Positions 1,381 through 51,438 of a stretch of 64,000 bases of DNA are shown one piece after another. A model generated the notes under the pieces. The model saw only the letters and a program-made list of their open reading frames with translations. It did no database searches and was not told where the DNA came from. Every line of letters starts with the position of its first letter. Positions within the stretch are counted from its first letter, which is position 1. A program made the position numbers and the translations under genes. The DNA is from Oikopleura dioica. Lineage: Eukaryota > Animalia > Chordata. The stretch spans positions 3,100,001 through 3,164,000 of the forward strand of contig OU015568.1 of NCBI GenBank assembly GCA_907165135.1. Reading direction: 5' to 3'.

Positions 1381-1732
1381 GGATATAGCCGTTCTCAAGG
1401 CACTTTTGTAGCGCCGAAATGGGACGATAAAATTTTTTCATTTCAAGACAGTTCCTACCTAAAATCGTCTGTAGAATTCAAATCTGATGTTTTTCAAAAT
1501 TTTTTTTCAGGAAAATTTCTCTCTAGAGCGATTTGAAATCTTACGATCACTTTTTCTCGAAAATTTTCCATTAAATCGCTAAAACTAAACCGTGTATTAT
1601 AATAAGAAACTATCAATCTAGCTTCTTAGGGCTTCAAAATTTCAAAACTCGACCAAATTTATATTCTAGCGCCTTCTTCTATTCAATCTCTTCTTCTTTC
1701 TCGTTGATGATTCGCTCGCGCGCGACCAATCA
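1381..1732 (+). repeat. Left terminal inverted repeat (352 bp)
   Basis: Reverse complement of 9754-10105, no mismatch seen by eye. The inner end carries a CCAAT box (GACCAATCA). Confidence 0.95.
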
Positions 1733-1989
1733 GCGCAAAACAGCCCGCCATGATTCTCAAGAAGACCCGACCCTCAACCTCAATCATTTTCCATCTGATT
1801 CATATTCCACTGTAGTATCTTTCCTTCGGCCAATAAACAAACTTTCGGAAAATCCGACGAATGATTGAAGAACAGACAAATTGTCTTGATTCTTTCTTGA
1901 ATAAAAGCTTGTCAATCTGATACTTTCACTCAGTATTGAGAAACAATGAGTACTAAAAGCAGTGTTGCAAATTTTTCAATATCATAAGC

Positions 1990-4900
1990 ATGGCAAAGAA
2001 TAATCTAGCTAAGAGGAATAAAGCTAGAAGCAGAAAAAGAAAGAGTTTAGCTGTTAGAAGAAGGCAAGACAAATATGGTAGATTGCTGCCAAAAAGGTGA
2101 ACTTGGTTTTGCTGGTCTAAACCAAAATATGGAAGTGAATATATGATAAATGAAAATCATTTTTTCGGAGCAAAATTCTATCCCCCATCTTTCTTGTGCT
2201 CATCTGATAGAGCAACTCCTGAGGAGTCGATTCATATAGTTTTGAGGGTTTGAGTCATCATGAAAATACTATTTTTCAAGTACCATCTTCGGATCGTCAA
2301 TGCGCGCGTGGATTCCATATTTTGGTTTTACCCTTTTAGTTTGATTTATATTGACAGTATTGAAGTTCTCCTTCGCTAACCACTGCTTCTTCTTCGAATC
2401 TTACCGAATCGACTTGTGAAAACATCGACGATGCTCTTGTTCACCCCTATTCAAATCCCGAAAACAACGCTATTGCCGAAAACCTTGGATGGATCGATAC
2501 ATCATCCTCAACGTTTGGTCATTTCGAGGAACCTCTTGAAAGCTCGATCTACTATCATCATAATGTCGGAGATCACATTGAAGAGCAACAGATCAATGAT
2601 GTAGCAGATCGTCTTCAAAAATTACAGATCACTCATCCTACTCTGCCACAAGAATCTGAAATGTCCATTTACAATCCTGACCAACATGACCCGGTGTCAA
2701 ATGAGCCAGAAATCACAGAAACAACTCCTTTTCCAGCTGATAAATCGGTCGCCCCTGAATATGTCACGAATGTCACGAATGTCACGAATATTTCTTGCGA
2801 AGATGACTCTGATACATGCATGATTTGGTCACAATCAGCGATTGAAGAGCTTGTCAGTAACGTGGCCTGCTCAAAGTGCAACAAAAAACTAAATGTGCTC
2901 TTCTTTCAACCAGATGTGTTTCATTTCAAAGCCAAAATTACATGCGAAACTAAATACTGTCGCGGTGGATTTACTCTGGAAAACACTCCCTCTTCTATAA
3001 ACGATACGATACTTTGCGCGTCGAAATTTGCGGGAATGAGTGCGTCTCAACTGCGTAGATTTTGTTATTTCAATAATTTTGCGGTCAAGGTATTTTTATC
3101 AAAGAAAGTCCTATATTCATTTCTTTAAGAGTTTTACTCAGACTTATCCTGCTCGTTATCATCAGAACAACAAATTCTACACTCGGCGTGCTAAAATCTA
3201 CCGAGAGATAAAAGGTACAAGTCCATATTCTATTGTATTTATTTTGAGATTTGGATTATGTACCGAGGTATTTAGCAGAATGATAGAAAAGGCAAAAAGC
3301 AATTTTGTAGGAGAAAAATGTTTTTTTTTGGAGTGAACTTTTTGTCGAGGCAGAATCTGCATTCATACTTGGTTATTTCGTTGTTCGATTTCTTTGAGCA
3401 CAGCCAGGAAGTTTTTCTTCTTTATCATTTTTGTCTGGTCTAGTATCTTATCTGAACGCTTGCAATTATTTTCCGAAAAACCTACAGTGGTGTGTGGAGT
3501 TGGTGCACCCCTAGATAGCGGGTAAAAGGTGCACAAACGCATCACTCACTTTTGCTACTTCTAGAAGAAAACAATAGAAAAAGTGCGGGTCAGGGGTGCA
3601 CCAACGCAGCACTCGCTAAGGGTGCACCAACTCACTACAATATTGTAACGCCGAAGAAGTATTCCAAGCTTTTACATACCGATAGAATATATCTGCGGAT
3701 ACTCTGTAAAATTCCTTTTGAGGCGGCAAACTCCACATGATATCGACGTTGTGGAAGTCCGAAACTGGGTGGTATTTGATAAGCTTGGAAACATTTTGTC
3801 CTTTATATGCAGATCCGACAGACCAGTCCGGCTCGTCCAGGGTTTTTCTCAAGTTGCGGGAGGGAACAAGAGAGAATATTTCTTCGACCCACTTTTGTTA
3901 CTCGTCCAGCCATAACGAGCTCTTTTTCATAGTTGAATGTACTGTAAGATTTGACAACATAAGTTCAATAATCAACCTTTTCCTGAATAACGAGTTTCAT
4001 CAAATTCGACGAGTAATTCCTTGGATACCAATAGTGCAACATGTCATATGCTGTTTTTCTGATTTTCTTGAGATCCTCCCAAAGACTCTTTCTGTTTCAA
4101 AAGAAACCGCTCTGAGGATGGCCTTTTTTCATCACTGCCTCTTGGATAATCTGGAATTTGCGACAATAGTCGTCGGTTTTTGCCATTTCGAATTCCGAAT
4201 GAACGGAGGCAACTATTCAAAGGGATAGTTTTACTGTCAAAAGATCATTATTAGACATGTGTCGACCAAGATCTAATCTTAAGAATAAGGAAAATAGGTT
4301 CTATCCCTTCCTTTCGCGTTCAACAGAATCTTCCTTCATCAATGGGTCGATGAAAAACTGCGCCCAAATGTCCAGCGCTTCTCTGAACTTACCCGGCGCC
4401 ACGTCGAAATGATAGTTGGCGTATTCGAGCTCCGTACGAAAAGAGAAATGGAAAGCGATAGACAACGGTATCTGTCGATTTTATTGCATGTGAACAACTC
4501 TAAGCGGAAAAAAGTTGGCTCGCCTCAAAGAGAGATGGCGGGCGATATACATGTAGAACGAAATTTGTAAAAAATATGAGTAAGATTCAATATCAATTTG
4601 AACTTGTAGAAGTTGGCTAGTCCATTCGCGCCTTCAGCTTGCGGGTGATGATTTTGTCCTTTTGAATGATGGTTACAGTGGCTCCCCAGCCGGATGCAGC
4701 GTTTCGATCGCAACCAGAAAGCATAGTTTGTGAGACGCATTCGAAAAGCTCCTCCGCTGGCTAAAAGAGTAAGATTTGCGCGAGACCCTGGCACTCGACT
4801 TTTTCGTGAAAACTTCCGGCGCGGACGACCATACAAGCGGCCGACACTTTTCTTAATTTCTCCTCGCCCTCTTCTTCTTCTCCTTCACCGTCGCATTCGC

Positions 4901-7897
4901 TTTTCTCGAGCTCATCGGAGCTCAGGTCTTCTTCTTCTTACCGTTTCGGGCTCTCTTTCATGTTCCATGCTAAAATCGAGCTGATCTCCAGGCCTTCAGA
5001 AAAAGTACCTTTTGACATTCATGTTGGACAAATGCGTCAAAAAATCGTTGTAACTCTCCCTCTCATGAAGCGCCACATCTCTCTCGTCGAAATCATCTTC
5101 TCTACCGAGAGCGAAATCAATCGAAAACTGATTCTTCTGAGTGTCGATTCTGCGTTGCATTTCTAGCTCTAGCGCTTCGAATTCTTCGTTGAAAGCCGTC
5201 ACATCAATTGGTACGTGTGTTGGTAGAACTTTCAAAAGGAAGCTCATGTGCCAAATCTGAATAAAAAAATTAAGGACTTGCGATGAAAGACCAACAAGAA
5301 ATTCTTGACCACTACATGGAGTACTGTGCGAAGAACTCAATTATTCCTTCTTTTTCTGTTGATGGAACGTATCCTTGCAGAAAAGACTCCCCGATGTGTG
5401 CCCTCACTGTCCTGGTTCGAATTCCTGGTCAGTCAGCAAAGGTGGTTCACACACAAATAATTGCTCGCTGGAAGACATGCCAGGATCTCTCCCAGGAATG
5501 GATATAAATTACCTTTGTGAACAGGGTTCGGTATTTTGCATTCTTCGAAAAATTCGCCAAAGACGACGGTGAATATGCTCTTTTTTCGCTGTTGTAGAAG
5601 CTGCAGTAGGTGTTGAATTCTATAAGAAATATTTCATGATTCCAGAATTTGTTTAGTAATTGCCTCGATATAGTCTTTCAAAAGTTATATATTATTGAAA
5701 ATCGAATATCGACAATGAAAAACAAGTTTTGAAATCTTGATTATTGTACCTAAGAAGTGTTCGAAGGCCGCAAGCGGCTTTCTCGCTATTTTTTTCAACC
5801 AAAGTCGGTCTTACCAATTTCGAGCCACAAGTCCCCTTTTTTTATGCGAATGCCAACGAAGCTCTGTCGATTGTGGCTGTCGTTTAGCACCTGGGTAGTA
5901 GGAAAAATCTCCCTCACGATTCGGGTAAAGCCAGAAACGCCGAGAACTGGGGTTCCCTTCACGCCTGCAATTTTCAATTCTTGCATGGCTTTGGTTGTGT
6001 AATCGGTGAAGAAACCCGAGCGGGAGAGCAGCTCGTTTTCGTCGCCGAGTTCGATGCGTTTTCTGATGAAAGCACGAGCGAAATTAGCAGATGCGGCTTG
6101 GATTTGGGATTGATCCTCTCTCGGGCCATTTGCTACTAGAAAAAGTAGAGATAGAATTGAAAAATGCTACCTTGTCCAACAGGTCGCATTTTTGAGGAGT
6201 TTGGGACTTGGTAGCATTACTGTGAACTTCTTGTTGTTGGGACCGGAGAGCGGCTTGCTTGGCATGAGAGGAGTGAACAGAGTTGTGAGGAGTTGCGGGA
6301 TGGGGATTTTGAGCTTGAGATTTTTGAGAATTTACAAGAAGACGTAGTCGAGGGCAGAAAGGAAATCCGTGCGTTTGATCATCTTGGCAGTGAGATTGTA
6401 CCCCAGAAATGGGGTTGTAAGCTGAAAATATGCTTTAAAAGGGGGTCAAGATAGATTTGTTAGTGATTTCCCCTAATTATATCCAAAAAAGCTTCCTGAG
6501 GGCGTGTCAAATGAGCCTTGCTCGTCAAAGAGTCTCGAGGCTAGGGCTTTTAATCTTGCTCTGATCGGATGGAGGGACAATTGTCCGCACACAAGCCATG
6601 AGGCGCTGCACTACACCGCGCTACTAGCCAAGAGATGGGGGCGCAACGGAGCGCGCGCTGATATCAAAATCATCAGCAGGGATCAAAGTCTTTGATTCAA
6701 AGAACACTTCTCGTTGTTTTGAATATATTTATCTAGTACCAATCTAAACAAAAATTTTTTATTTTATCACCTAACAAAAAGATAAAGAATGGTAGCTGCC
6801 CGTTACATTCCTTTTATCGCGCCTTCTTTTGTTCTGCCAGAATTGGACAGATTCTCAGAATTTCTTGAACATATATTATCAAAAATACAATATTAGAACC
6901 TAAGTGCCCCTCACCACGGGGCTTCGCCCCTTAGGTCCTAAGATGCCGGGGTCTAGTCTAGGGTTACTTAGGGTTACCTGCGGTAGATTAGACGGTGATT
7001 AAATTTTTCAAAGAAGAGAAGCTTGTCGGAGTCAGTGACAGTCGGATCAATGAGCGATATCTACACGATGTAATTACAAAAACTCAAGGAGGGCTACAAT
7101 TTTTGAAGGACAATTCTGCAGAAATGACGCCCGAGCTTGTCAAAAACACTATTCTACGAGTTTGGTACCACAATGCGGGAGTGCATACTGACTGTGATGA
7201 TTCTTTTTGCTCTGGAGAAACTTGCTACTTTCCTACATCAGAAAAATTTACAAAAGAAGACTTACTTGTGGCTATCTCTAAGAGTTTTTGTGCGAAAAAA
7301 TTCGACCTGAACAAATTTGCATCTGATATTGCGACTTCGGGCGAAACAAGGTTAGACGCTCAAAACGAAAATATCTGAAGAAATTTTTAGTCGTAACGAG
7401 TCTTTCCACTCTGCCATATTTTCACGATGGCGCAAAGAATCTCCACTTAGTTACAGAACTAAAGATGAGTTTACTACATGCGTCTTCATCTCATCTTTGA
7501 GTTTTAATAACAATGAAGCTGATATTGCGGAAATACTAGCAAAAAAACTCGATCGTCAAATCTCACCTGTCATCATTAAAATGATGAGAAATGAAATCAA
7601 GAAAAGGAATGTTCAAAATAAGAAAAATGGGCCGATACAGAAAGAAAACAGGCGCAAAAAACTAAAAGATTCGAAAAAACTTAGACTCAGGTGAAAAATC
7701 CACAGATCTCAAAACAATTAATTTAATTTAGCCTTTATAACAAGAAGCATGAGTTGGAAAGGGATCGTTCAAATGCTGAAAAGAGAGAGAAGAACCAGAA
7801 CAAAAAGAAAGGTTTTCAAGTTCCAGTGAAGGAAGTGGTCCAAGTCATGCCCCCAGAAAGTTTAGTTGAAATGATGCCAATGACGGAGAAAGGGTAA
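1990..7897 (+). CDS. Multi-exon DDE transposase (Kolobok / 'Mutator-like transposase' domain family)
   Basis: Inferred exons: 1990-2096, 2366-3089, 3130-3214, 5275-~5470, ~6499-6685, ~6989-7350, 7391-~7690 and ~7733-7897. Motifs: CxxC zinc knuckle (CSKC...CETKYC), SVDGTY (first D, 5361), SSKSLE, IISRD, HxxC (HAGVHTDC) and TSRNESFHS (catalytic E, 7398). Several donors and the C-terminal exons are uncertain. Confidence 0.75.
3483..3647. mobile_element. Nested TA-flanked MITE (Tc1/mariner-like ends)
   Basis: GAGTTGGTGCACCC (3497-3510) is inverted at 3620-3633. Degenerate pairing extends to TACA...TGTA ends, with extra internal GGTGCAC(C/A)AAC copies. Confidence 0.55.
3690..4938 (-). pseudogene. 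NRDC: Captured nardilysin-like (M16A metallopeptidase) gene fragment, with introns and premature stops
   Basis: Four segments: acidic tract plus [24 protein letters not shown] (4938-4777); [41 protein letters not shown] (4436-4312); IASVHSEF...[13 protein letters not shown]...[13 protein letters not shown] (4212-3977); [15 protein letters not shown]...[12 protein letters not shown]. They match remembered nardilysin motifs (SAAALCVGVGSF..GLAHFLEH; ALDRWAQFFIHPL; WALPPQ..YRV). Stops at 4097-4099 and 3898-3900. Confidence 0.85.
4617..4760 (-). pseudogene. PSMB3: Captured terminal exon of proteasome subunit beta type-3
   Basis: After a polypyrimidine AG acceptor it reads [47 protein letters not shown]. 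This matches the remembered PSMB3 C-terminus ([39 protein letters not shown]). No other PSMB3 exons were found nearby. Confidence 0.9.
4912..6189 (-). CDS. Transposon accessory gene with RFX-like winged-helix domain
   Basis: Inferred GT-AG exons in matching phases: 6189-6171, 6135-5815, 5785-5750, ~5621-5513, ~5263-5005 and ~4965-4912. Exon 2 ([24 protein letters not shown]...[35 protein letters not shown]) resembles the RFX DNA-binding signature (FGKLIRSVFP...YYGIRLK). Confidence 0.6.
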
Positions 7898-9139
7898 ACT
7901 TATACAGTGTAAATTTTATTCTTACCTTTTCATTAAGTTCCAAAAAAACCAAGTCAAAAGCAAGAACGCCCCTTGGAGATATTTCCAACACGAAATCTTC
8001 ATTTCAACCCTAATCAAATCGCCCAAACAAAAAATGCTATTTTCGCGGGTTCAACCAATTTATGGAAATGATTTTATGGATCTGGGCTTTGATTCGCCGG
8101 TAGGCCAAATAAAGCAATCTTATTAGTTATCCAAAAATGCACCGCCATAAATTTGTTGTGTCTATTTTTACTGAAAATTGAAACTGAAGAATAATGATCG
8201 AAAAATTTCCAATCTCACCGTCATGTCTTTGACCACGTCGCAAAGCCTATGAATTTGCATCCTCAAGTTCGTTTCATTATTTGCAAAATAAGTCTTTTTG
8301 ACTGCTATGCCGCTGCTTCTGAGTTTGCTTCGAGAAATTCTTCTGAGCTTGACTTTCAGTAATTGTTTGCAGCGTTTTGTTCTGTGCGATTAGTTGCGCT
8401 TCTACTTCACTCTAAATAGTTGTAAAATACTGGCAAATGTATCTTTCAATGAAAACAAAAAACAATGCATGGCTGCTTTTTTAGCAATCAAACAAAGTTT
8501 CTTTTCAAGAAAATATGTATTTAACTTTTCAGGATTTTGAACTTTGATCATAGCATGAAGATGGATTGGAACTTTGAAATAGCTTTCAATTATTTACAAA
8601 AGTGAGGAAGAAAAGAGAGAGGCGCTAGAAATTACGCTTGAAAGGAAAAAAATAACGACCCGCGCTGAAATTTGAAACAAGGGCAGCTCGTGGGTATGTT
8701 GCAAGTTATCTAGTAATGAACTCTGAAGACGCTGATAAAAAAAACGAGGGAGTGGCAGATTCAAATTTGTACAGGAGGCAATGGTCTAAGATTGACCACA
8801 AATTGGAAGAATTCAAAGTGTCTTCGCGAATGAATTGAGCTCTTTTAGCGAGTGCTCCTGAATATGATCAGCAGATTTCTAGCTCGGTTTCCGTCGCGTG
8901 GCTGCATATCTAAAGACGTGGCTAGAATTATGCTAGAATAGCACTCCGATGTACCTTGCATTGATGATTTAGAGCCAAAACTTGGACTTTGATGAATGTA
9001 TTGAAGTACTGTCCCAGGTTGTCCATCTTGTATGCACCATTTTCGAAAGACATACCATTCGACGAGTTCGATTTTGGCTTCTCAAGCCGCCTTTTGAAGG
9101 TTTGTTGCTCGCTTTATTTTATTGTTGTCGCACACTTTG

Positions 9140-9496
9140 AAGGTTGAAAAATCTTCTTCTTCTGTCAGAATCGAGTTTCCATGGAGTGCTTGCTGCGGTT
9201 CTGAAGATACGCCTTTGAAGATAAAGCAATAAAAATATAGAATATTGATAGGATAATTATGTTAAGATGTATTTACCTCTTCGAGAGTCATTTTCCACCG
9301 TCTTAGGGCTCTCACTTGGATCCAAACTTGAAACCTGCTCATTTGAAGTGTATTCCGTTGACTGGTTCTCTTCTGGAGACATCTCACTGAAAGAACAATT
9401 TGTCTGGATATTTGCACGATTTGCGTAACAAACCTTGGAAAACAGTTTTTCTCTTCCATGACGATCTCCAGCGCGTGTTTTTGAAGCAGTGATCAT
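9140..9496 (-). CDS. Possible second inward-facing accessory gene, 5' exons
   Basis: ATG at 9496, a 75-codon Ser/Glu-rich exon ending at a GTAAAT donor, then a short AG-acceptor exon near 9213. No recognisable domain. Confidence 0.3.
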
Positions 9497-9753
9497 TTCT
9501 AATAATAACAGCTATCGTAAATTTTACGAATCTTTTAAAAATTAATTGAATATAACAGCAGATTTTGGATAAAAAAGTATCATTAATTGAATTGTTTTCT
9601 TGGGGAGCATATTTTATAAATTGTTAAATTTCTAATATAAATAGTAGTATGGTAAAAAAATAAATAGTGTTCACGGTTTCGTTGCAAGTTCTCGCAGTTT
9701 CTCTCGAAAAAATGAAAATGGGCCTCTCCTCCACGAGAGTTCTCACCGCTCTT

Positions 9754-10105
9754 TGATTGGTCGCGCGCGAGCGAATCATCAACGAGAAAGAAGAAGAGAT
9801 TGAATAGAAGAAGGCGCTAGAATATAAATTTGGTCGAGTTTTGAAATTTTGAAGCCCTAAGAAGCTAGATTGATAGTTTCTTATTATAATACACGGTTTA
9901 GTTTTAGCGATTTAATGGAAAATTTTCGAGAAAAAGTGATCGTAAGATTTCAAATCGCTCTAGAGAGAAATTTTCCTGAAAAAAAATTTTGAAAAACATC
10001 AGATTTGAATTCTACAGACGATTTTAGGTAGGAACTGTCTTGAAATGAAAAAATTTTATCGTCCCATTTCGGCGCTACAAAAGTGCCTTGAGAACGGCTA
10101 TATCC
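9754..10105 (-). repeat. Right terminal inverted repeat (352 bp)
   Basis: Reverse complement of 1381-1732. Confidence 0.95.
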
Positions 10106-10124
10106 TTAACCGACCCATACCAAG

Positions 10125-12915
10125 TTCTCCAACTGGCAGAGTCGATAAATGCTACTATTATGCTCCAGATTACAACCTGAATCGATTTGAAGAGGCTCAA
10201 GGTTATATTGCCAGTAACCACTTTAACGCAAAAGTTTCTTCAACAAGCTTGAGAGGAGTGTTTTATCTGATTAGTGTTCAACTGGGCGACTTTTTCATAA
10301 AGCTGTCAACAACAGTTTCTTTGAACAGGATTCGAAAAGACGAGCAACTGGAGAAAGGGTGGAGAAAGAAAGAAATTCACTTCCCGACAGAGTTTAGAGA
10401 CCTAGACCCTGTTCATGTCGTCCCTCTGGCAATAGTTGAAAAGATAGTCTTGAAAAAGATTGATCTCTATTCTTTTGAACTTGAAAAAGACCGATCTGGG
10501 AAAACTTCTTTTAATTTTGGTATCAAGAAGTATCCAGCTTTCAAATACTCTGTATTCGTTGTTGCTGGAGGCAGAAGGAAAATTTCTGGTTCTCGGTCGC
10601 GAGTGGATCGGCTCTCTGATCGAATACGACCAACAATCAATCTGTTATTCAGAACTATTTGCCTCGGACGATCCTCACTATACGGATCAAGTTGCAGTCA
10701 ACAACGACGAATGCGAGTACTTTGGAAACGGAATCATCCACGACGAGAAAATATTTTTTCAGAATTATGTTTTTGATGTTTTATTCGAAATGGAGTTTAA
10801 TTTTGGGAAGGATTTTCAACTAACATTTGGTGGAATCACATACCTCTATGCTCTCAAGTATAGACCAGCAAAATATTGATTTGAAATAAATCCACTTAAG
10901 AACGTATAGAGCTCGAATTTGTCCAACAAAATGCTCAACAGAAAATGCACGTGACGAGCAATCCCTTCTTCGCATTCCACGATGATGTCTTTCCTGCTTT
11001 CGCGAAGAATGCTGTCTCTCAGGAAGAATTTCCAGGCGTCTTTTACAAGAAAACATTTGTCCCTGACTATCCTTTTTCCTCGCTCAAAGAATTGACCCAC
11101 ATCTCAACCATTGAAATGAAATTTGATGGCACTGATAAATTTGTGTTCGAAATCAACGTGACCGAAGCTTTTGGCGAGGCTATGGAAATTCTTGAGTGCA
11201 AATTTTTTGATGCAACAACTTTGCTCCTTTTTGGGATATATGAAAATGGCTCATTTTGGGTGACATCTGATTATTTTGAAGAACGCTTGTCCTTTCAGAC
11301 GAATGGATTAGAATCAACAGATCTTGCATTTAATTTTAATTCAACATCATTGAACTCGTCAAATTTCGAAGTTTTTGAGGAAAAGTTTAATATGAAGATA
11401 TTTTTTATTAAATTATGTCATTTATTATTATATTTCATATTTATTTCTTGTTCTAATTAAAGCTCGAAAAAGAATCGCATTCCAAAAATCAAAAGTGATA
11501 AGAAAATAAAATTTTCTGCACTTGAAAATGTCGAAAACAAAAAGGTTCGCATTTCGAAGTTGGACAGCGTTACAAAAATACGAAATTTTGTTGGCATACA
11601 ACACGCATCCCAAATAAATATTTTATTGCCTTATCCTTCGTGCGCTGTTAAACCCTACGCTTTGATGCCCGATGGGTCGAGAATCAACAATGTTTTCTTC
11701 AAGACTCCTGCCGATTACTACAACGGATGCCTTGCAGAATACGTTGAGGATTCAAGACATGCATTGGTCAATGGGCGACTTTATATTTTTGGAGGAGTGT
11801 ATAAAAAAACTACCAGAGTAACAAAGATTTTAAAAAATGAATATTTCTTATTACATTGTAAATAGATTGCGCGATTAGATGGCTGCCAATTCACAGAATT
11901 GAGCACCCGTCTTTATCTTAATTATTACTTCGGCCATTCGGCTATATCTTCCGTACAAGGAAACGAAGGTTAGTAAAAATTATGAACAAAAATGTACATT
12001 GTGATATTGATTATTGTGACCGGATATACTCCGTTCGCCGGGCTTTGAGCCAAACAGTCCCGGCGAACCGAGGGTGAGGGGAAAATCCCGGCGAACCAAA
12101 GGTCATTCATTGTGACCGATGCCAATTTTATTCTTTTAGCGATCATTTGCTTCGATGGTTCAACTCGCAGATTTTGTGAGGTCTTTAATGAAGAGGGAAT
12201 TACAAAGGCTTTAATTACAAATATAAAACACCAACATGGTGAATTGGGACTCTACAACGGTCATGTGATCGCAATCGGAGGACAAGGAGCAAACGGACAA
12301 GTCGAGAAGTTGTCTGGAGATACATGGACAATTATGCCGAGCTTGAATCATCCTAGGTAAAAAATTCAAAGTATTCTATATTTCAAAAAATTTAGAAATA
12401 AAATTCAAGGGTTTTCTGCTATCGGGCTTGCAAACGGGAGACTTTTGACAATCGGAGGGGAAGAAAATGGCAGAAAATGGGAACGATACGATGAAATCTG
12501 GCAACTGTTCAACGATAACTGGTCTTTAGTCGGCTCCCTTTCAATAGTAAAATGATCTTTCTTTTTTAACATTTTTTGACATTGAAAAGTTTGGTTGATT
12601 TTATTCTAGGCAGTATCTGTTCCGTCAGCGATTAAATTGGACAACAGCATCTTTGTATTCCCTAGATTTATGACCCAAGACGAGTTTCGTCCGATTCAAA
12701 AAATAAAACTAGTGCAAGGGTCAGAAATGTGTTGATTTTTCAACAATAAAGATAAAATTTTATTCCCCATTTTTCAAATTTTGATCCTTGATAAAGACTC
12801 CGAAGAAAACGTCATTGGAACTCACATTATCGCAGAGCAGGGTTACGAAAAACGTGAAACAATATTTAATCCAATTATTTTTGTTTCACCTGTTGGTCAG
12901 TTTGGAAGCTGTTGA
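10125..12915 (+). CDS. 3' exons of beta-propeller/kelch-like family gene, copy 1
   Basis: From acceptor 10124: SPTGRVDKCYYYAPDYNLNRFEEAQG..., colinear with 48843 onward. Later exons show GRLYIFGG, IARLDGCQFTEL, AIICFDG, LGLYNGHVIAIGG and LLTIGG blade-like motifs. Stop at 12913-12915. Needs GC-AG (10429-10489) and GG-AG (10806-10900) introns. Confidence 0.8.
12013..12118. mobile_element. 86-bp intronic insertion flanked by 10-bp direct repeat
   Basis: ATTGTGACCG at 12013-12022 and 12109-12118. Internal GTTCGCCGGG with two inverted CCCGGCGAAC copies. Confidence 0.55.
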
Positions 12916-14761: not shown

Positions 14762-15296
14762 GAACACGAGGTTTTGTACTTTTCTAGGCGATTTTTATAC
14801 AATTTGAAAAAATATTTATTTAATAAAAATATCTTGAAACAACCTGTTTCTCTCTTGAAAAGATGAGAAAATCAGAAGATTATGTGAAAGTGCAATTTTA
14901 TTGAGTTGATGTACAGAAAGTTAAAATTGTTTGGGCACACCTACAAATCAGCATTTGAGCGGCGAATAACTTGCTTTTTTCATCGAAAATTTGGATCTTT
15001 CGAATTTTTTTTTCTTGATTTTTGAAAATTTTCATTTTGACTTTTTCATCGAATCAAGGCTTATTAAAAAGCAACTGTGAAATGTACAGGGGGAATTTTT
15101 GTTGTTTTTTTTTTGAATTTGCAGTTTTCGTGATTTGGGCTTGATTTGGTCGTCGCGTGGTGGCGCTGTTGTATTGTCGCTTTTTGGTCTTTTTTGTCCG
15201 GTCGAGTTATTGTAAGTTAGTTTTTTAAATATACACAAAAGCAGTACAAAAATTATCTCCGGCGGTGGATATAAAATCATTAAATTAATTAATTAA

Positions 15297-18200
15297 TTAA
15301 TTAATGTAATCAGAGTATCGTCGGCCGAGAAGTTTCATCGTGTAATCGTCCGTGTACCAGCACTAGAAAAAGAGATTATTTTAGTTGACCTTGTATTTTG
15401 GTTGAATTTGTAGTTTGAATGAAAATGGCTTTATAATTGTAAGACGCGTGTTTTGAATAATTACCTGTCCGTTGGAAGTTTCCCGGGTGACCACTGGAAT
15501 GAGCGAGGAGGAAGTGATCAAATTAGCCTGAGCTTGATCCAACGCGATGTTGTTTGAGGCGAACTGACCCAAGAGACCGGTAGCTGAGAGGCTGTTTCCG
15601 TCCTGAAAAAAAACATTCAGAAACATGCTCATTAAAATTGACTATCAAGCTTTTCAACAAACTTAAATATTGTTAACTACCTCGTAGCTGACGAGCTCAA
15701 CACCAACGGAAGAAGCATCAGAAATGAGTCGAATCTGGATCTGATCCTTGTACTGGAGGTAGCAGTCGGAGCCGGTTGATCGCACTTGCCAGTCCTTTAC
15801 CAAAATCATCTAGAAAATCAGTTAGGGTGGAGGAAGAGAGAATCGGTTTTTACCTTGTCAGATTCGAGTCGATAGATGGCGCCGTCAAAGGTTTGCTTGA
15901 GGATTTGACCACCAGCGAGGACGATAATCGTTGTAGATCCGAGTTTCACTCGGACTTGATCAAAGTACAGCTAAATTTTTAGCATGAAAAGGGTTCGAAG
16001 AAGGATTTTCTTCTTACCTGATTGTCTTTGTCGAGCGCAGCCTTTCCAGAAACAGCAATGCCAACAGTATCGTCCTTGAGAATATTGAACTCGCTTCCGG
16101 ATCGTCCACCAATGTCAAAACAAGCGGGGGAGGCGCTGTTTCGAAGGTTGACATTGAACAGGGCTGGGAGACCAGAGACGGAAGCAATCGATGGCTCTGG
16201 AGCGTCCATTTCGATCACATTTTCTTCAGGCGCCTGAAACGAAAATTTGAATATTCTTGAGATCGAGGCGGCTCGCGACGGCGTGTTTTTTAATTAAAGT
16301 GAAGTGTGTACCTGATTCTTCCACCAGAGCTTTCGGTACTCGTACTGGACCACGTGTTGAACTTGCGTCTTGAGGTTGAGGTCGAATTCCTCGAAGGAGT
16401 CGGACGATCGACGGGCGCGATTGCCTGGAAGCGGCTTAGTTACAGACATGGACATGACGGGAGAGAGGTAAGCGGAAACGTGCTCGTTGCCAGAGGAAAT
16501 AGCAATCAGCTTTCGAGTCACTGAAAGTTAGTTAGATTACCGTAAAAGAGGATATCTTTCTACCTTCATTGAAGTCCTCAGCAGTGTGAGCAATGTGTCT
16601 CTCGCGAATAAGCTGCTTAATGACCTGGAGTCGGTAAATTCTCTCAGCCAGATTCAAATTGACGTTCTTCTCATCCTTTCGGCCGGCGAATTTGAGGTTG
16701 ACAGGGCTCATGATCTCGTTGACCTGAAAAATACGATTATACATAATGCCGCTAATTTTCACGAAAAAAGTGTGAAAATTCAAGAGATTGAAAAAAGTGT
16801 CATACGATGTATTTTTGCTCGATGATTCGCTCCTCGCCGTTCGGGTCGATGATTTTCAAGTCGTTGGAGACGGTTTTGAATGTGCCGAGGACCTTCTCTT
16901 TGATTTTGCCGGCGAAGGTGAATTCCTGGCCGTTGCCGAGCTGGGATTGGTCGATGGAATCGTATGTGGTCTCGTTGGAGTCAAGGAAGTCATCAGAGTA
17001 CATGAACTGGACGGATTTCATTGTTCGTCGGGCGTCGGTGAATTTCATGACCTAAAATAATAGCTCGAAAATTGCTCAAATTTCATCAGTTTTTACCTCA
17101 TCGAAGAATCCTTGCATCTGGAAAGCAGCGTTGGTGTCTTCAAAGATCTGTCGGGCGATACCAGAGTTCAAAACGGACAAGCGAGAAAGGAAGCTGTAGC
17201 TGATTCCAGCGCCAAATCCGATTACATTGAACGCGATGTTGGCATTTCCTTGCTGTCGGGATTTGGTGACATCCGAAAGGATTCGCGACTCTTCAGTGAC
17301 TCCCACAGTTGGGGTTCCGTCGGTCATAAATAGGATCATGCATGGGACAGTTGAGGAGGATTCGGAGTTGCAGAGCTCGATGGCATCAAGAAGAGCGGCG
17401 TGCATGTTGGTTCCGCCACCGGCAGAGATTCTAGAGATAAATGATCGGGCTTCTTCGACGTTGTAGTTGGTAGCTCGGACGAGTTTGTTTCTCCAAGCGG
17501 TAGTGGCATAGTTGAAACCGACGATGGAGAATTTTGCGTTTCGATCGAGGGAAGAGATCATGGATCGGAAGGCTTCTTTGGTCTGATCTAATTTCGTGCC
17601 AATCATGGAACCGGATTTGTCCATGACAAAGACAACATTGTAAGGAGCAGTGGAGCTTGACTGAGCGTTTGACTTGAGCATGATCTTTGGTGGAAGACAG
17701 GTCTGGACAAAGAAATTATTCTGGATCATAGCATCACAAGCTTTTTCGTGGTTTGTATCGTAGACGAGCATAAGTCGGCCAGTAATACCGTCTTGGCTGA
17801 AGCTGTGTTGATCCTCCTCGCTTGGGGCGTATTTGACTTCTGCGAATTCATCTCCCTTTTCCCATTTGATTTCAGCATCAGAACCTGGTCGGAATGACTC
17901 AGAACCAGATTGGAGTGGGAAAGCTCGGATCCACTTAATTCCGCCCATGTCGCTGACTTGAATCGATGTGCTCATGTCTGGAACGATTTGGGAGGGGGCG
18001 AGGCTGACCCAGTGCTGGTATCGGTCCTGAGATCGCTCGAGAAGCTCTTCGTAGGTGAGTTCAAAGGTGACGTTGTCCCAGGAGTCAATGTTCATTTTGA
18101 TTTCATATCGGTGAGCGTCTCGTTGGAGAATCTGGGGAGCGCTGAGTCCGTGGAGATTACCGCCGGGGCTGTGGCCCTTAATCATTTCACTTGGGTGGGG

Positions 18201-20593
18201 GTTGATAGTGATTTTAGACTTGTTATCAGTTGGTTTCTTCTCAACAGCCTTGGCGGGGTAGATTTCAGAGTCAAAGACTTCTTCGCCAATGAACAATCGG
18301 AGACCGGTGATGAGTGCGTTTGGTGGGACAAGAGCGTCAAAGACAGCTTCTCGTGGCTCTGGGTGATCGTTTCGGATGTTTGACTTGATGGAAGTAGTGG
18401 CGAACTTGTTGTTGATCTGAGTATCGATATGCAGAGACTCGATTGTGGGCTTGGCTCGTTGTCCAGCGGCGACGTCGAAAGTGATCGAACCAAGGAGGAC
18501 CTTCTGCTCTTCTGCGGTTGCGGTAAATGTGACGGACGAGATCTTGCCTTGTTCAGTGTTCGCTGGCGGTCGGATAGTCACGACAACATCAGTGTAGTAG
18601 GTCTTGGAGGTTTTAGAAGGTGAAATATTGACGATCCAATCTTCGAAATCATTAGCAGCAAGGTCGATTTCTCGGTAAGCGTTTGTAACTCGGACTGTGA
18701 CAGTAGAATCGACGCCTGGAAGGAAGTCGGTCTTTTCAAGCTCAGTGAGGAGGAGAATTTTGGATGGGAAGATCACGTGTGTTCGGAGAACTGGGAATCC
18801 AGATTGATCAATTCCTTCGATTTTAGCCATTTGGAAAGTCTTTTGTTCGAGTGATTCGCTCTCAAGAGGCATCGGGAAGGCGGAAACGAGTGATTCGACG
18901 AGGTAAAGTGGGGAAACTCGATCATCGGAGATTTTATCTTCATCCTTGAACTGGACGGATTGAAGTTCTACATTTTCAACACCGAGAGAATGGACCAACA
19001 AAAATTTAGATTCTTCATCAGCGTTGAGGGATCCCTTAGGGTTGAGGCCGAATGGAGACGTAGACTTGAATTCGCCGTTGGTGTTGGCAAAGGTGAAGAA
19101 AAAGTCTACAGGGGATTGACCACGGACCTCGATGTAGAAATCGGTATCGCATTTGACCTGAGCTTGCCAGTTGCCGGGCTCGACGTTCTTGATGGAATAC
19201 AAGTAGTGTTCTCGGGTGGCGACGAGGGTTTCGATGTCTCTCTGTGGACGATATCGGGGGTTGTAGATCATGAGTGACTGGAGGCTTGGGCAGAAGACTT
19301 CAAAGATGAGCTCGGACATGGTGGAATCGACTGGAATATCAACGATGGAGTTGCCTCGGCCAGTGACGGGAATTCGCTGGTTTCGAACGATTGTGACCTG
19401 ATCTGGCTGGAATCGAGACTCGATGACGGGGATGAGATCGGAAGCCTGTCGTCGGGGAGTTTCGTACATCATACCGCCAGTAGAAAGGGCAAGGGTGTTG
19501 TACATGATCTTCGAAACATCAGTCACGTATTTTGGATCGAGAAGGACGACGTTGATAAGAATATTCTTGTTTTGGGCGTTTCCAGCGATGATGTTGACAA
19601 GTCGTGGGTTGTCGACGGGGAATTCGGCGCCAGTCACGAGGAAAAGAACAGTACCAGGGGTGGTGTCCTTGAGAATAGATTTGTAAAGGAGATTGAGATC
19701 GATTTCTTGGTTGTCTTCTCCGACGATCAAGGCGGAGTTGGGAGCACCGTTGGTCAGGGACATGTAGACCGCGGAAGGCTTGTCGAGCATGATTCGAAGG
19801 TGATCAGCGGATGAACCGTCACCAGCGTTGCCGGATTTCTTCAAATTCATGATGTCATCTTCCGATTCAAGAGTGACAACTGGCTTGTAGGTGTTTTTCA
19901 AGTAAAGCAAGTCAGCGTACTGGATCGATCCGACGATGTTGCGGACTTTGTAAAGAGTGGTTTCCATATCTTCGATTGCGGCCTTTCTATCCTCCATGGT
20001 CAAGCAATGTCCACCATCGTGGAGGTGTTCCCGGTAGATGTGAGAAAGGAGATTTCCGAGCTTTCGTCGGGCCTCGTGATTCATGTGATCCTTCTTGGCG
20101 AGATTGGTGAGACCAACAATGGCGTTGTATCGGCTGAAATTTTACGGTGAGTGGCGAGACAAGAAAAAGCGAATTGGAAATTTATTTTAATCTCAAGTGG
20201 ATAGCACCGTTGCACTCTCGAGAGTGGAATAGAACTTTCCTCCTTTTGCGCGAAGTATCTATTTTTAGAGGTCATCTCTTACCTTGGAGGGGCCTCGTCT
20301 GATGGAGTTGCCCAGCCGGCGGCGAGGATTTCGTAGAAGGCAGAGTGGAACATCTTGGTCGAAATGCTCAAGGGGCAGTACTTGCGCACGGTGGTCAATG
20401 GATCGGTGATTTCAATGTCTTCATTTGTATGTCGCTCGGCAGCAGCATCAACGTCGATGCAGTGAGTAAACACGCTGCGAGCAATTGCATTTGAAGCGAC
20501 ATCTGTGAAGGAGTTGATGCACGGCTCGGGATTTGTGGAGCGAACAAGTGTCGGGCTCAGGAAGAGGCCCACTGCGGTAATGAACCGCAGCAT
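15297..20593 (-). CDS. Secreted VWA7/hemicentin-N-like plus inter-alpha-trypsin inhibitor heavy chain (VIT-VWA-ITI_HC_C) fusion protein
   Basis: Signal peptide MLRFITAVGLFLSPTLVRS. VWA7-like helical domain (ARRKLGNLL), degenerate VWA (YNTLALSTGG) and beta-sandwich. VIT (INNKFATTSI...EAVFDALVPPNALITGL...FELTYEELL), MIDAS DKSGSM, GGGTNMHAAL, FMTDGTPTVG, AERIYRLQVIKQL, TGLLGQF and C-terminal CWY...YSDYIN*. Confidence 0.8.
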
Positions 20594-21996
20594 GTTTAGC
20601 GAGCTTCTCTGACCTGGAAAATGATGATTAGCGAGAGTTAAAATATTAGAGCGAGGGAGAAGGTCAGCGACAGTGTTAAAAAGGATGAAGCGGCCTTTAG
20701 AAATTATAATCAGATGACTATCGGGGTGATATCGGGAAGGGCACACTTCCGCCGTATTTGAAGATAGCGGGAGTTTGTGCTCGAGGTAGTATGAGTACGT
20801 ATTATGGTGTTTAAATTTGCGGGCAACGCTGGGGAGCAGGTACAAGCTGGACGAATATGCAAAGTAAAATATACACGCGCAGATTTTCTCGGCCTCGAAA
20901 CGACTGGATTATCCCCGGAACTCGCGAAATTACGCAAAAGGAATCGTTTATTTGCTCGCCTAAGGAAAATTCTTTCTTATTGAAATTCTGAAATTGCTTC
21001 AAAAATTGACCCAAAAAGTGTGAAGCGCAGGAAAAGTCAACGACGACTTATCAAAAAGTAAATCGGGCCAAGCTCGATGCCCCGTTGAGTAAAAATGGCA
21101 GCTCAAAGAGCACGACTGCTGAATGGAAAAGTGCATATCTAGGGTTTGTCTAGCGAAAATTTGAATTCTCGGCGCCGCTTTCTAAAAAATATTCGCGCCG
21201 CGCGAACTTTCACGAATTCAGGTTCACACTTATTGAATTACTGTTTATTCTACAGTCTTCACAACAGTTCCAGAGTACTGTTGATCCACGTAGGGATTGT
21301 CCATCTGCGAGTCCAAATTACCCAGGCGAGGAGATGATCAAGCCTGCTGCAAAGCGCTCCGCAAATGCTACACACACTGACCATGGTGGACCCCCGCTGG
21401 TGGCTATTTATTGCTAATTTGACTTTTGCGGCCGTAATTTGTATGACTGAGAGCGCGCGGAATTTTTACCCCGGCTATCATACACGCACAACGCGCCATT
21501 TACGAGAAATTTCGGCCTAATACTCGCCAAGAGAAAAGTCAACTAGGGGACTTCTAAAATTGATGGTAGCGAAAATGTAATGTAGAAAAGATGTTGGTTT
21601 TTGGAGATGCAAGATTGATAGACTACCAAAATAGAAAAAGAGGTTTATCATTTTATGAGGTTTCTCTTTTAAGGTTTTCAATTAAAAAAAAAACAAAAGT
21701 TTATCTTCAAATATAAAATATAAGGCGCTAAAAAAGAGATATGAAGCCTTAATAATTAACTCGATGATAAGTTAAATATTTTTTTTTTCTAAAATTAAGG
21801 TTCTTCATTGTTGATATAGAGGAAGGAGATTTGTTGAATTATTATCTTTTACCTTTTGTTCAAGAAGCAGGTTCTTCGTTAATGTTTTGGATTGATTGAA
21901 AGTTCCCTGAAAGAAACAGTTAGAAATTGAAATTTAATTTTTGAGGTGCCGTCGAATTGATTGGATAAATCAGAAAACTCAGAATTTTAAAAATAA

Positions 21997-35362: not shown

Positions 35363-37052
35363 ATGTCATTTATTTTTATACTAAAACTGTTGACATTCGT
35401 GACTTTTGCGACATTCGTGACATTTTTTTAATTTGATTTATTAAAAAAAAAATCACGATTTCAAAATCATTCCCATGTCAAAATATGGTCCATGTGGTAA
35501 GATAGGCCGCAACGTGTCGCAAAAAAACGAAGCTAAGCACCCTTAGGTTTAGATAAGACAAAAATTCTAGCAGTAAGTGCGTTTTGTGATTTGCGCTCAT
35601 AATGACTCCCGAGTTCGATAAGCTTCGGCTGGCTGCCTTGGGTTAAGAGTGGGGCCCTTTTATATCATCATCAGGGGACAAGTGGCGTCTTGGTTAATTT
35701 TGGTTTTCGCAGGTAGATACCCTTGAGAATTCCCTTTTTCCCGACTTCGAGGAAAGATTTTTTGAATTTTTAATCGAGAAAAAGTCAGTTGCGTAACCAA
35801 TTACGCTCCTCCCAACATATTTACGTCTGTGGTGAATTTTATAAAGACTTTCTAGTGCCACGTTTTTTCTCATCCCCTCCGCCGCAGCTACAAAAAGAAA
35901 GACAAAACCAAGCTTCAAAACTTGAACAAAAAAGTTGAAGCCAATTTGGATTTGGAGAGTTAGTGCTCGTAACTTGCGGTCATAGAAGGTGCAACTCGGT
36001 GAGGTTGTTGAAAAAAAGGAGCCCACGTGATCAAGTCTGACGAAGTTCGAGGTTGAAGCTTTCAAAGTGGTGGAAGCACGCGAAAGTGCTCGTTTCCGAT
36101 CCAACTGATGATGCAAATACATTGGGATTATGCGAAAACGGCTTGACTTTATCGTCAGGTTAGAAGCGACTTTTTAAAAATGTGACGCGAAAACGGGTGT
36201 TCTCAAATTAAATAGTCATCAAAATTTGGTCAAAAAAGAAAAAAAATCCAAAAATGAAGACTTTTTTTACCAAAAATTTTTTTTGTTGATTTTTTTTTAC
36301 GCCAAAAAATTTCAATAAAAAAATTTTTAAAAATATTTGAAAAAGTAATTCGATCGAAATCTCGTTCCTTCGGCGCTAGAATAAAAATAAAAAAAGCGAC
36401 TCGATAAGTATTTTGTCTAAAACGCTCGTCCACGTTTGAGATCGTTTTTCGCGTCGGGGCTAATCCCCTCGCTGATCCGAAATTTTTTTTATCCCAAGTT
36501 CATTCGGGTGGCGATTTTGAGCTTAGCGAGAATTCGCGAGTCGCGATGGTGCTAGAATTTGGCATTTGCGTACCATGTCTCGCGAATAAAAGTGCTTTAG
36601 CTAAAAGAGGGTTTTGTAGACGCGACTACCGGTAAAGAGGCAAATATTTGGGAACATCGGGAGTGATAACGACTTCCGAAAGAGTTAGGCGGCTACTGGC
36701 GAATTGGGAGAGTCGAAAAAATAGAGAATTTTAGCTTTTATCTTTCCGAATATGAGATAATAAAGTCCGTCTCTCACTACAGTAGCACGTGGTTGCAACA
36801 ACGGCAAGCCACAACCCAATTTTCCCGTGGTCTGATACGGACCGCCGAACCGACCGGTTGTCCGAGGCAATCACAATCGCGCATAAGAAAATTTCGCACC
36901 GCGACGAAATTCACGACTGATTCAATCTGAGTCAAATCTTTGCGAAAAGTTCCATTTCTTAGCCGCATTTCTAGCAAATCACGCGGGCAGTTTTAAGGGT
37001 ATACATATCTTTTATTCGTCTTTTTATCATTATATTACTCAAATCTTAGCAC

Positions 37053-50400: not shown

Positions 50401-51438
50401 CATACATACATCTTTAGTATACTTAAGTATAGTTAGAAGGCGTTGTAGTCATGTTTCTTCGACCAAGATTGCGCCAAACTATAAATAAACTATTGATTCA
50501 ATAATAGTTCTTAATAAGAGCTTCTTATTAAAAAACTTCTTAAGATTGCACGGTTAGATGGATGTGAATTTACCGAATTACAAGTTAAACTCCTTGAAGA
50601 TTACCGAAGTGGACATTCCGTATTACCCATAAATAATGGTCAGCAAGGTAGTAAATCAGTGACGCTCAATTTCTTGTTTATTTGCTTTCCATTCGGAACG
50701 AATGATTCGAAAATTATTTTTAGCAATTATTTGTTTTGGTTATGCCTCTGTTAAATATACAGATACAAGAGAAAAAGATTGCGAACAGTTCGACGGAATT
50801 ACCGTTAACCCGATCTCGAGAACAAATAGTGAGCATTGGAATGGGGGATTAGGGCTTTATCAAGGACGAGCAACTGTCGTTGGAGGCTCGTATTCAGAAG
50901 GAGCCACAGAAACATTAATGGATGACGGCTGGGTTTATCTTTCTTCGCATCCGAGGTTTTCCCTTACTATTGACATTAATTTAACAAAGGTTAAGAAAGC
51001 TAGAATATGTTACTACTGTTGGGCTTTCTTCAGGGGTTCTATTGACGACCGGAGGAAAAGAGTGGAATGGTCCACTATTGAATGATATTTGGCGGCTTAT
51101 GGACAATCGTTGGTTTCATCTCGGCCACCTTAACATGGTAAATTATTATCTTGATCAAGTATATAAAAACAATCTCAGGCAATAATGAAGACGACGACGT
51201 TACTACTCAAAGATTCAATCTATGTTTTACCTGGCGAGACAAATGAAGATGCAAGACCTATTCAACTAATAACTTTAGGTAAGCGCTAAAGGATTGACGG
51301 GACCAGTTGTGTTTATCTCATTTTTCAGATTTTGGGGGCCACCAAGTCCGGACTGAAAATATAACCAACGATCGTGCACCTTATTCAGTTGAATATCCAA
51401 TTGCTTTTGTCTCTCCCATTAATTACTGCAGCCTTTGA
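47446..51438 (+). CDS. Type II membrane protein: Cys-rich domain, Thr/Ser mucin stalk, beta-propeller/kelch-like C-terminus (copy 2)
   Basis: N-terminal TM (TYLTLGSLFWITIMLIAG), CPFQKYCPAGCPCPFYDC, STTTQ repeats, a 535-codon open frame, then IARLDGCEFTEL, AIICFG and LGLYQGRATVVGG. Stop at 51436-51438. Contains an internal in-frame TGA at 48784-48786 (see findings). Confidence 0.8.

Follow-up and report, generated by a model that had tools for sequence, protein, structure and literature searches.

A probable Pack-type Kolobok transposon with fragments of three host genes in the genome of Oikopleura dioica

Introduction

Transposons of the Kolobok superfamily are recognized by a TTAA target site duplication (TSD), by RR..YY termini, which separate them from piggyBac elements, by a C/DxxH motif between the second catalytic Asp (D2) and the catalytic Glu (E) of the transposase, and by a zinc finger between C/DxxH and E that was found in almost all Kolobok lineages (PMC9587614). 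The published alignment of these transposases (Data S5) contains the blocks DGxWxKRG, S(A/S)K(S/A)ME, DGDSS, (C/D)xxH, H-x4-H-x2-C-xn-C and NES(F/L)(H/N)S, and the Kol0 lineage has an additional gene product, KolX, which is P2X7 ballast-like and has seven conserved Cys (PMC9587614). The Pack-TIRs of animals, which are terminal inverted repeat (TIR) transposons with captured host sequence, are the second system to be considered: 370 of them were found in 55 of 100 animal genomes, among them Kolobok Pack-TIRs in Xenopus laevis (XR_XL and XFB_XL in Supplementary Data 1) and piggyBac ones in medaka, and gap filling and FoSTeST were proposed as their origins (Tan et al. 2021, PMC8277862). In that survey a parental copy was required, Ciona had no Pack-TIR and Oikopleura was not included (PMC8277862). 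In this article we describe an 8.7-kb transposon of Oikopleura dioica (OU015568.1:3,101,381-3,110,105, on the PAR chromosome of assembly OKI2018_I69), which occupies positions 1381-10105 of the analysed stretch of 64 kb (the window) and carries pieces of host genes between the exons of a Kolobok-type transposase.

The locus was placed through a neighbouring frame of 1002 codons, which falls into a 90% cluster with the O. dioica proteins CBY14858.1 and CAG5079588.1; the record coding for CAG5079588.1 (L005, GCA_907165135.1 OU015568.1) is 100% identical to the window, and its coordinates are those of the window plus 3,100,000. The OKI2018_I69 assembly is based on Nanopore reads, its median intron length is 49 bp, and its gene models were made by AUGUSTUS with RNA-seq hints. 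No report on Kolobok in Oikopleura was found in the papers searched beyond one unrelated co-occurrence of the two names. The original prediction, made from the letters of the window, had described a Kolobok-type transposon with its own transposase and an accessory gene, in which intron-containing fragments of two host genes were thought to lie inside a transposase intron.

Results

Boundaries of the element and its insertion site

The element is enclosed by inverted arms of 356 nt (1377-1732 and 9754-10109) which are 100% complementary, each arm being composed of a 352-bp TIR and the palindromic TTAA; the TTAA duplication, the GG termini and the mismatch-free TIRs of the original prediction were all recovered. 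The termini read 5'-GGATATAG ... CTATATCC-3', that is GG..CC, and fit the RR..YY signature, while the TTAA duplication on the two sides (Table 1) is of the Kolobok type. The point of insertion is an intron of about 90 nt in a host gene paralogue, located between two conserved exons. When the element and one TTAA were removed, the flanks became colinear with the paralogous gene at 48.6-49.6 kb, and the junction fell about 13 nt upstream of the 3' splice site. The insertion is real and recent.

The interrupted gene (1180-1380 and 10106-11460) has a better-preserved paralogue 38 kb away (48612-50436), which holds a frame of 535 codons at 48829-50436; the amino acid identity of the flanking exons is about 73%. 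No annotated gene was present at the interrupted paralogue in the examined part of the NCBI table.

A CCAAT-like GACCAATCA stands at the inner end of the left TIR, and on the inner side both TIRs (1720-1732 and 9754-9766) close with GCGCGCGACCAATCA, a CCAAT-like box facing inward. The distance from the TIR to the first ATG is 257 nt on either side (the putative transposase at 1990 and a minus-strand open reading frame at 9496). The inner flanks beyond the TIRs showed no similarity when they were aligned, and since the sequences between TIR and ATG are unrelated, the equal spacing is probably a coincidence. The search for subterminal repeats in the TIR returned just short A/T-rich chance matches, Rfam gave no match on 1-12 kb, no second copy of the element or of its TIR was found elsewhere in the window, and the 23-mer of the TIR end was absent from the JGI metagenome contigs that were scanned.

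Table 1. Features of the element and its borders (positions in the window)
Feature	Positions	Strand	Basis or remark
Left TSD, TTAA	1377-1380		Inverted arms run 4 nt past the TIR, TTAA being palindromic
Left TIR, 352 bp, starts 5'-GG	1381-1732	+	100% complementary to 9754-10105
Putative exon 1 (E1), basic, nuclear localization signal-like; GT donor at 2097	1990-2096	+	Open in frame with exon 2
Exon 2 (E2), N-terminal region with CxxC...CxxxxC zinc-finger-like motif (VACSKCNKK...)	2366-3089	+	Reading frame
Two small exons (E3, 3130-3214; E4, 3249-3267) with a 34-nt GT-AG intron between them	3130-3267	+	Open chain E1-E4
M16 downstream block, exon-like 4480-4304, 4216-4100, 4096-3968 and 3897-3682	3682-4480	-	GT..AG spacers
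PSMB3 piece: intron tail 4776-4761 (about 16 nt, TAG end), last exon 4760-4620, stop 4619-4617, 3' untranslated region (UTR), AATAAA 4485-4480	4480-4776	-	PDB match
M16 upstream block: acidic stretch, then start of the M16 domain (...GLAQ), cut just before the HxxEH part	4777-4937	-	Weak Pfam match
114-codon open frame running up to a GT donor; maybe M16 5' part or a further captured piece	4999-5340	-	Reading frame
D1 exon with the first catalytic Asp; acceptor AG 5273-5274; in-frame TAA 5504-5506	5275-5503	+	Kolobok DGxWxKRG block (PMC9587614)
ARID2-like fragment: two exons and intron 6170-6136	5832-6330, maybe above	-	Homology to P0025 and L009-L014
D2 exon: SSKSLE and D2-equivalent Asp (6681-6683) in degenerate context; TGA 6693-6695	6492-6695	+	Homologous exon in L008
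C-terminal exons 6992-7350, 7391-7690 and 7732-7894, with stop codon	6992-7897	+	Zinc finger and E motif SRNESFHS
Internal DNA, overlapped by the 98-aa minus-strand model (6332-9459)	7898-9753		No homology, no KolX motif
Right TIR, 352 bp, ends ...CC-3'	9754-10105	-	Inverted-repeat comparison
Right TSD, TTAA	10106-10109		Host exon restarts about 13 nt on (acceptor ...ccaag, exon TTCTCC)

Transposase exons and their assignment to Kolobok

The exons of the putative transposase are on the plus strand, and their borders were taken from three-frame displays and then checked by script (Table 1). The four N-terminal exons, E1 to E4, form one open chain with GT-AG introns, the first of which (2097-2365) is 269 nt long; the four short introns of the element measure 34-41 nt. 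The three C-terminal exons splice to 274 open codons through GT-AG introns of 40 and 41 nt.

Four motifs in these exons match the published Kolobok blocks, namely DGTY..RK around D1 (SVDGTY), SSKSLE, the zinc finger H-x4-H-x2-C-x4-C and NESFHS (RNESFHS), and each of them occurs once, in the published order and on the plus strand only. The zinc finger has the same spacing as, for example, HIFGEHKRC...C in the published alignment (Data S5, PMC9587614). Three or more of the four motifs were obtained in none of 2000 dinucleotide shuffles, a significance which is somewhat overstated and to that extent counts against our reading, since the patterns were composed after the sequence had been viewed. 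Taken with the termini, these motifs would place the transposase in Kolobok rather than in piggyBac or the MULEs, and we hold this assignment with fairly high confidence.

Homology searches with the exons brought few relatives. In a phmmer search with the 128-aa transposase exon against 1.84 billion representatives the sole match was a marine metagenome fragment of 113 aa (P0001), in which the zinc finger is also kept. This fragment and two contigs, L001 and L008, are 36-38% identical to the C-terminal exons of the element and share one intron at the same position. The contig L008 holds the upstream exon as well (KKLPPEVYSEDCSAKSME...IIIVTDGDSSL...DLSH), with SAKSME, IIIVTDGDSSL and, 33 residues after D2, DLSH, and the acceptor of the D2 exon (AAAAAAG followed by CT) is common to L008 and the window. 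L001 and L008, which are ENA metagenome contigs, and JGI 3300072015 belong to a related yet distinct Kolobok-like family with intact-looking DGDSS and DLSH, presumably from another larvacean, on short marine metagenome contigs.

Other searches were negative within their scope. For exon 2, a word-indexed search with its 254-aa N-terminal frame gave no homologue in a set of 5.8 billion proteins, and no Pfam family scored above threshold; none of ten open reading frames of the window was present in the protein collection on exact look-up. Among 28 exon-sized pieces compared with Pfam only M16 was matched and no transposase family was found. Codon-usage scoring was too weak to tell coding from non-coding pieces.

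A different frame of the D1 exon shows a CCHC-like pattern at 5399; it was rejected as a chance occurrence, because it is too near to D1 and the fold would lose two strands with it. Within the N-terminal transposase exon there is a perfect 9-bp tandem repeat (ATGTCACGA, 3.2 copies, 2761-2789) coding for VTNVTNVTN, to which a 32-bp stretch at 35395-35426 on the opposite strand is 87.5% identical. Just upstream of the acceptor of the C-terminal exons, the stretch 6900-6990 is rich in G+C and is made of short self-complementary and repeated units (CCCCTCACCACGGGGCTTCGCCCC; GGGTTACTTAGGGTTACC); it had no match elsewhere in the window.

Integrity of the transposase reading frame

The recognizable exons could not be joined into one transposase by canonical splicing. 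E4 and the D1 exon are out of frame with each other, and no single GT-AG exon in 3290-3460 restores the frame. From the D1 exon the next exon is reached solely through GT donors which truncate the former early, or through a non-canonical GA or GC donor. The equivalent of D2 stands in a degenerate context, ISRDQSL, with a TGA three codons after the Asp, whereas the relatives and the published alignment have DGDSS. For the sole CxxH candidate, CPLH at about 6800, no in-frame connection to the D2 Asp was found, and this held also when the search admitted GN-AG introns and one exon in between. The cargo lies in two gaps of about 2.0 and 1.0 kb, as compared to the 34-41 nt of the short introns of the element and the median of the genome. 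Between 5297 and the right end the annotation has no gene model on the plus strand.

On these grounds the transposase of this copy is probably defective. The original prediction had seen D/D/E motifs in a transposase belonging to the element itself, with the cargo inside one of its introns. D1 and E (SVDGTY..RK and RNESFHS) are indeed clear, and D2 proved to be degenerate; the cargo does lie between transposase exons, and the exons flanking it are not joinable in frame. The claim of a transposase of its own could not be upheld, since the reading frame has two or three interruptions.

Pieces of three host genes in the cargo

The host cargo, about 2.5 kb in total, consists of minus-strand pieces of three genes: an M16/nardilysin-like gene, PSMB3 and an ARID2-like gene. 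The original prediction had named the first two and missed the third.

In the M16 part, the piece 4304-4480 matched the Pfam family Peptidase_M16 (2.4e-8) and IDE in PDB (1e-4), and the piece 4764-4937 aligned with positions 10-37 of the Peptidase_M16 profile at E=0.023, below the cut-off. The downstream block contains in-frame stops (TGA at 4097-4099 and TAA at about 3898-3900). Its pieces at 4216-3682 had no Pfam or PDB match, and from their colinearity with human NRDC we take them, with their two stops, to be a putative continuation of nardilysin. An acidic insert such as the one ahead of the M16 domain is typical of nardilysin. A (GAA)n run which starts the acidic stretch (4934-4961 and 4900-4930, minus strand) shifts the frame relative to the upstream open frame, perhaps by a slippage event that affected the captured copy. 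The frame at 4999-5340 had no Pfam or PDB match, nor did the other unassigned minus-strand frames match PDB. A scan of JGI metagenome contigs for one M16 piece gave no match.

The PSMB3 last exon codes for residues 161-205 of 205 (45 residues; PDB E=1e-11). It occupies the place of the M16 part that would encode the HxxEH active site, and thus one captured fragment is nested in another.

For the ARID2-like fragment, the frame 5798-6166 is 82% identical to the 162-aa open reading frame product P0025 (E=4e-50), and an alignment of 5832-6289 with six contigs from a different Oikopleura lineage (L009-L014) extends over 485 bp at 76% nucleotide identity; in these contigs the intron is at the same position. 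We use the label ARID2-like because in the contigs of the other lineage an ARID domain lies 2.2 kb upstream (L011, 6e-6) and a weak match of RFX type (0.0064) was obtained for the captured exon. The homology stops at 5832 within an exon, so this breakpoint is not a splice site. Compared with the other lineage the piece has a synonymous divergence (dS) of 0.97 and an omega of 0.07 (1.35 and 0.03 for the control gene), which points to a captured copy that was mostly under constraint and to a capture that is recent relative to the split of the lineages.

Introns are kept in the cargo, from which it follows that the source was genomic DNA and not mRNA; a retro-copy origin was ruled out by these retained introns. 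Since the M16 piece has neither the HxxEH part nor the C-terminal two thirds, and PSMB3 is represented by just 45 residues, the captured pieces should not be the sole NRDC and PSMB3 copies of the genome, as the original prediction had also assumed. A parent-type ARID2-like gene is present in the contigs of the other Oikopleura lineage, and no parent gene of any of the three pieces was found in the window. With the M16 and PSMB3 matches, the GT..AG spacers and the acceptor-like tail before the PSMB3 exon, the prediction of intron-containing pieces from unrelated host genes is borne out, and the designation of a Pack-type Kolobok is a fair one.

The stretch 3499-3631 has four GGTGCACCAAC-like motifs in 133 bp (three exact and one with a mismatch) and a 32-nt imperfect inverted repeat. 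All four such motifs of the window are located here, where 0.21 would be expected by chance; the stretch could be a small nested repeat or a cluster of binding sites at the edge of the first cargo block.

Annotated gene models and the supposed second gene

The NCBI record places two minus-strand models in the element, one of 98 aa (6332-9459) and one of 287 aa, which runs from 6189 to below 5297 and starts inside the ARID2-like piece. Splicing of the three cargo pieces can give a single minus-strand open frame, with the stop and poly(A) signal of PSMB3 at its end, and a restricted enumeration gave many GT-AG models of exactly 287 codons from the ATG at 6189 to this stop. The 287-aa model is thus probably an ARID2-like/M16/PSMB3 chimera, as judged from modelled splicing. 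At least two gene models of OKI2018_I69 lie inside a transposon.

The accessory gene of the original prediction did not find confirmation: the KolX-type Cys motif C.C..C is absent in all six frames, there is no Pfam match in 7.9-9.75 kb and nothing in common with the 3' part of L008, and what is left is just the unsupported 98-aa model.

Outside the element, a neighbouring VIT/VWA (ITIH-like) gene at 15200-20850 on the minus strand was compared with L002-L007. Against transcripts from another O. dioica lineage its protein identity is 94% and its DNA identity only about 82%; against the Bergen reference the DNA identity is about 77%. These figures illustrate the saturated synonymous divergence between the cryptic lineages of O. 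dioica.

Discussion

Starting from what was directly observed, namely how the element is built, where it is inserted, that its cargo stems from the host, to which family its motifs point and where the frame is broken, we lean to the explanation that this is a Kolobok copy with host cargo, recently inserted at a TTAA in a short host intron and probably having no active transposase; we consider it somewhat probable as a whole. Accordingly the copy is most likely a non-autonomous Pack-type Kolobok. Its plus-strand exons of a Kolobok DDE transposase are interleaved with two blocks of host DNA in opposite orientation. Block 1 (about 3.65-5.34 kb) would be the 5' third of a nardilysin-like M16 gene, with the active-site part swapped for the PSMB3 last exon and 3' UTR. 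Block 2 (about 5.8-6.4 kb) comes from an ARID2-like gene, of which it holds two exons with their intron. A break inside the element may have been filled with these host pieces by template switching in the course of repair or replication, a route that would correspond to the gap filling or FoSTeST proposed for Pack-TIRs. Movement together with the cargo would need a transposase acting in trans, because the frame is broken between the N-terminal exons and D1 and again between D2 and the missing C/DxxH; such a transposase, supplied by an intact member of the family and acting on the TIRs, would move the element and its cargo.

Several points weigh against this explanation. We infer, rather than observe, that the copy was mobilized in trans and that the cargo travelled with it, and the identical TIRs, which fit a recent insertion, would be compatible also with cargo that came in afterwards. 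O. dioica has non-canonical G*-AG introns, and with GA, GC or GG donors many in-frame joins exist; a GA donor at 5496 could join the D1 exon to the next one in frame, and an intact spliced mRNA may be formed by way of such introns. In addition, the D2 Asp and CPLH as the C/DxxH motif were chosen by alignment to a relative that is just 37% identical. The Kolobok assignment itself is derived from motifs and termini, and comparison of the exons with Pfam, PDB chains and named proteins gave no link to a named Kolobok transposase.

Capture in situ is the alternative that survives best, and it seems rather unlikely to us. Here a plain Kolobok would have been inserted and the host pieces added later by transposition-independent gap filling, so that the cargo was never mobile and the element would be a single-copy Pack-TIR. 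Most single-copy animal Pack-TIRs were concluded to arise in this manner (Tan et al. 2021, PMC8277862); the failure to find a second copy in the window or in the metagenome scan agrees with it, and zero mismatches in 704 bp of TIR are compatible with a handful of later events in 8 kb. It demands, however, that at least three separate fragments, one of them nested, were all gained after an insertion too recent for the TIRs to differ, and in this model the parents are usually close by, whereas none of the three is in the 64-kb window.

It is unlikely, too, that the element is an autonomous Pack element, moving by an intact transposase with the cargo in two oversized but spliceable introns. Every recognizable transposase exon is open, the three C-terminal ones splice cleanly, the acceptor after block 2 is kept in L008, which puts this block at an intron position, the TIRs are identical, and the tolerance of O. 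dioica for non-canonical donors would provide the join from D1 onward. Against this stand the out-of-frame step from E4 to the D1 exon, the degenerate D2 (RDQSL instead of DGDSS) followed by TGA, the lack of any path that keeps both the D2 Asp and a CxxH, the length of the two introns, which at 1-2 kb would be extreme in a genome with such a short median, and the annotation, which has no plus-strand model right of 5297.

An assembly artefact, be it a chimera or an inverted repeat that was collapsed or duplicated in the process, is hardly credible. The sequence is known from one assembly only, the Bergen contigs L006 and L007 stopping short of the site; but a chimera is very unlikely because the outer junctions are exact TTAA duplications, both flanks are colinear with neighbouring exons of the paralogue and the Nanopore reads of the assembly are much longer than the element, and the internal transposase exons are consistent in order and orientation as well. 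In this respect the original prediction, for which a chimera not spanned by long reads would have been fatal, is sustained. That the element belongs to piggyBac, the other TTAA-specific superfamily, has a practically negligible probability and was ruled out. The TTAA duplication speaks for it; against it, the GG..CC termini carry the RR..YY signature of Kolobok (PMC9587614), no piece matches Pfam DDE_Tnp_1_7, and the exons have the Kolobok-type H-x4-H-x2-C zinc finger and NESFHS E motif.

A more far-reaching idea, which we regard as quite improbable, is that the Kolobok copy can still move, either with a spliced transposase of its own or with one acting in trans, and that its cargo is a transcribed, exon-shuffled gene consisting of an ARID2-like winged-helix exon, the N-terminal part of M16 and the C-terminal exon of PSMB3 with its stop and poly(A) signal. 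If true, a Kolobok transposon would be transporting a novel chimeric gene, and this in the free-living chordate whose genome is the most compact. As an alternative to a chimeric gene, read-through on the plus strand would give antisense RNA against three essential host genes.

The original prediction had supposed that host-exon capture by a TTAA/Kolobok element might be undescribed in chordates. This novelty has to be withdrawn, since the survey of Tan et al. (2021, PMC8277862) already contains Kolobok cases from Xenopus laevis and piggyBac cases from medaka. With the present element, an unusually large and mosaic one and apparently the first Kolobok recorded from Oikopleura, the small number of animal TIR transposons known to hold host exons is extended to a tunicate. 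Moreover, with the transposase exons still in place the breakpoints can be read against the gene structure of the element itself, and O. dioica, with its very short introns, small genome and several divergent sequenced lineages, is convenient for testing by which route, gap filling or FoSTeST, host pieces are captured and whether expressed chimeric genes result.

Compared with the Kolobok superfamily (Kapitonov and Jurka; PMC9587614), the element has the same TTAA, RR..YY termini, D1, S(A/S)K(S/A)ME, zinc finger and E block, and the DGDSS at D2 and the DxxH are found in the relatives of this copy. It differs in that sequence searches linked it to no named Kolobok protein, in the lack of a partner gene (KolX, nuclease or helicase) and of a CCHC finger after D1, and in the degenerate region of D2 and C/DxxH in this copy.

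With the plant Pack-MULEs and Pack-CACTA elements it shares the multi-gene mosaic, the retained introns and the possible chimeric frames inside a TIR element. These plant elements belong to other superfamilies, have TSDs of 9-10 bp or 3 bp and are normally short, non-autonomous and multicopy, whereas in the present element transposase exons remain.

The element also resembles the animal Pack-TIRs (PMC8277862), where host genomic sequence also stands between the two ends of a TIR transposon, the breakpoints ignore exon borders and a chimeric open frame is annotated across the cargo. The Kolobok cases listed among them are of the size of miniature inverted-repeat transposable elements (consensus 462-603 bp), and the median cargo of all Pack-TIRs is 224 bp; in contrast the element described here is 8.7 kb long, has kept most of its transposase exons and holds about 2.5 kb from three genes, one piece being nested in another. 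The kind of element is therefore already known, and what is new is its host, its size, the retained transposase exons and the mosaic of three genes.

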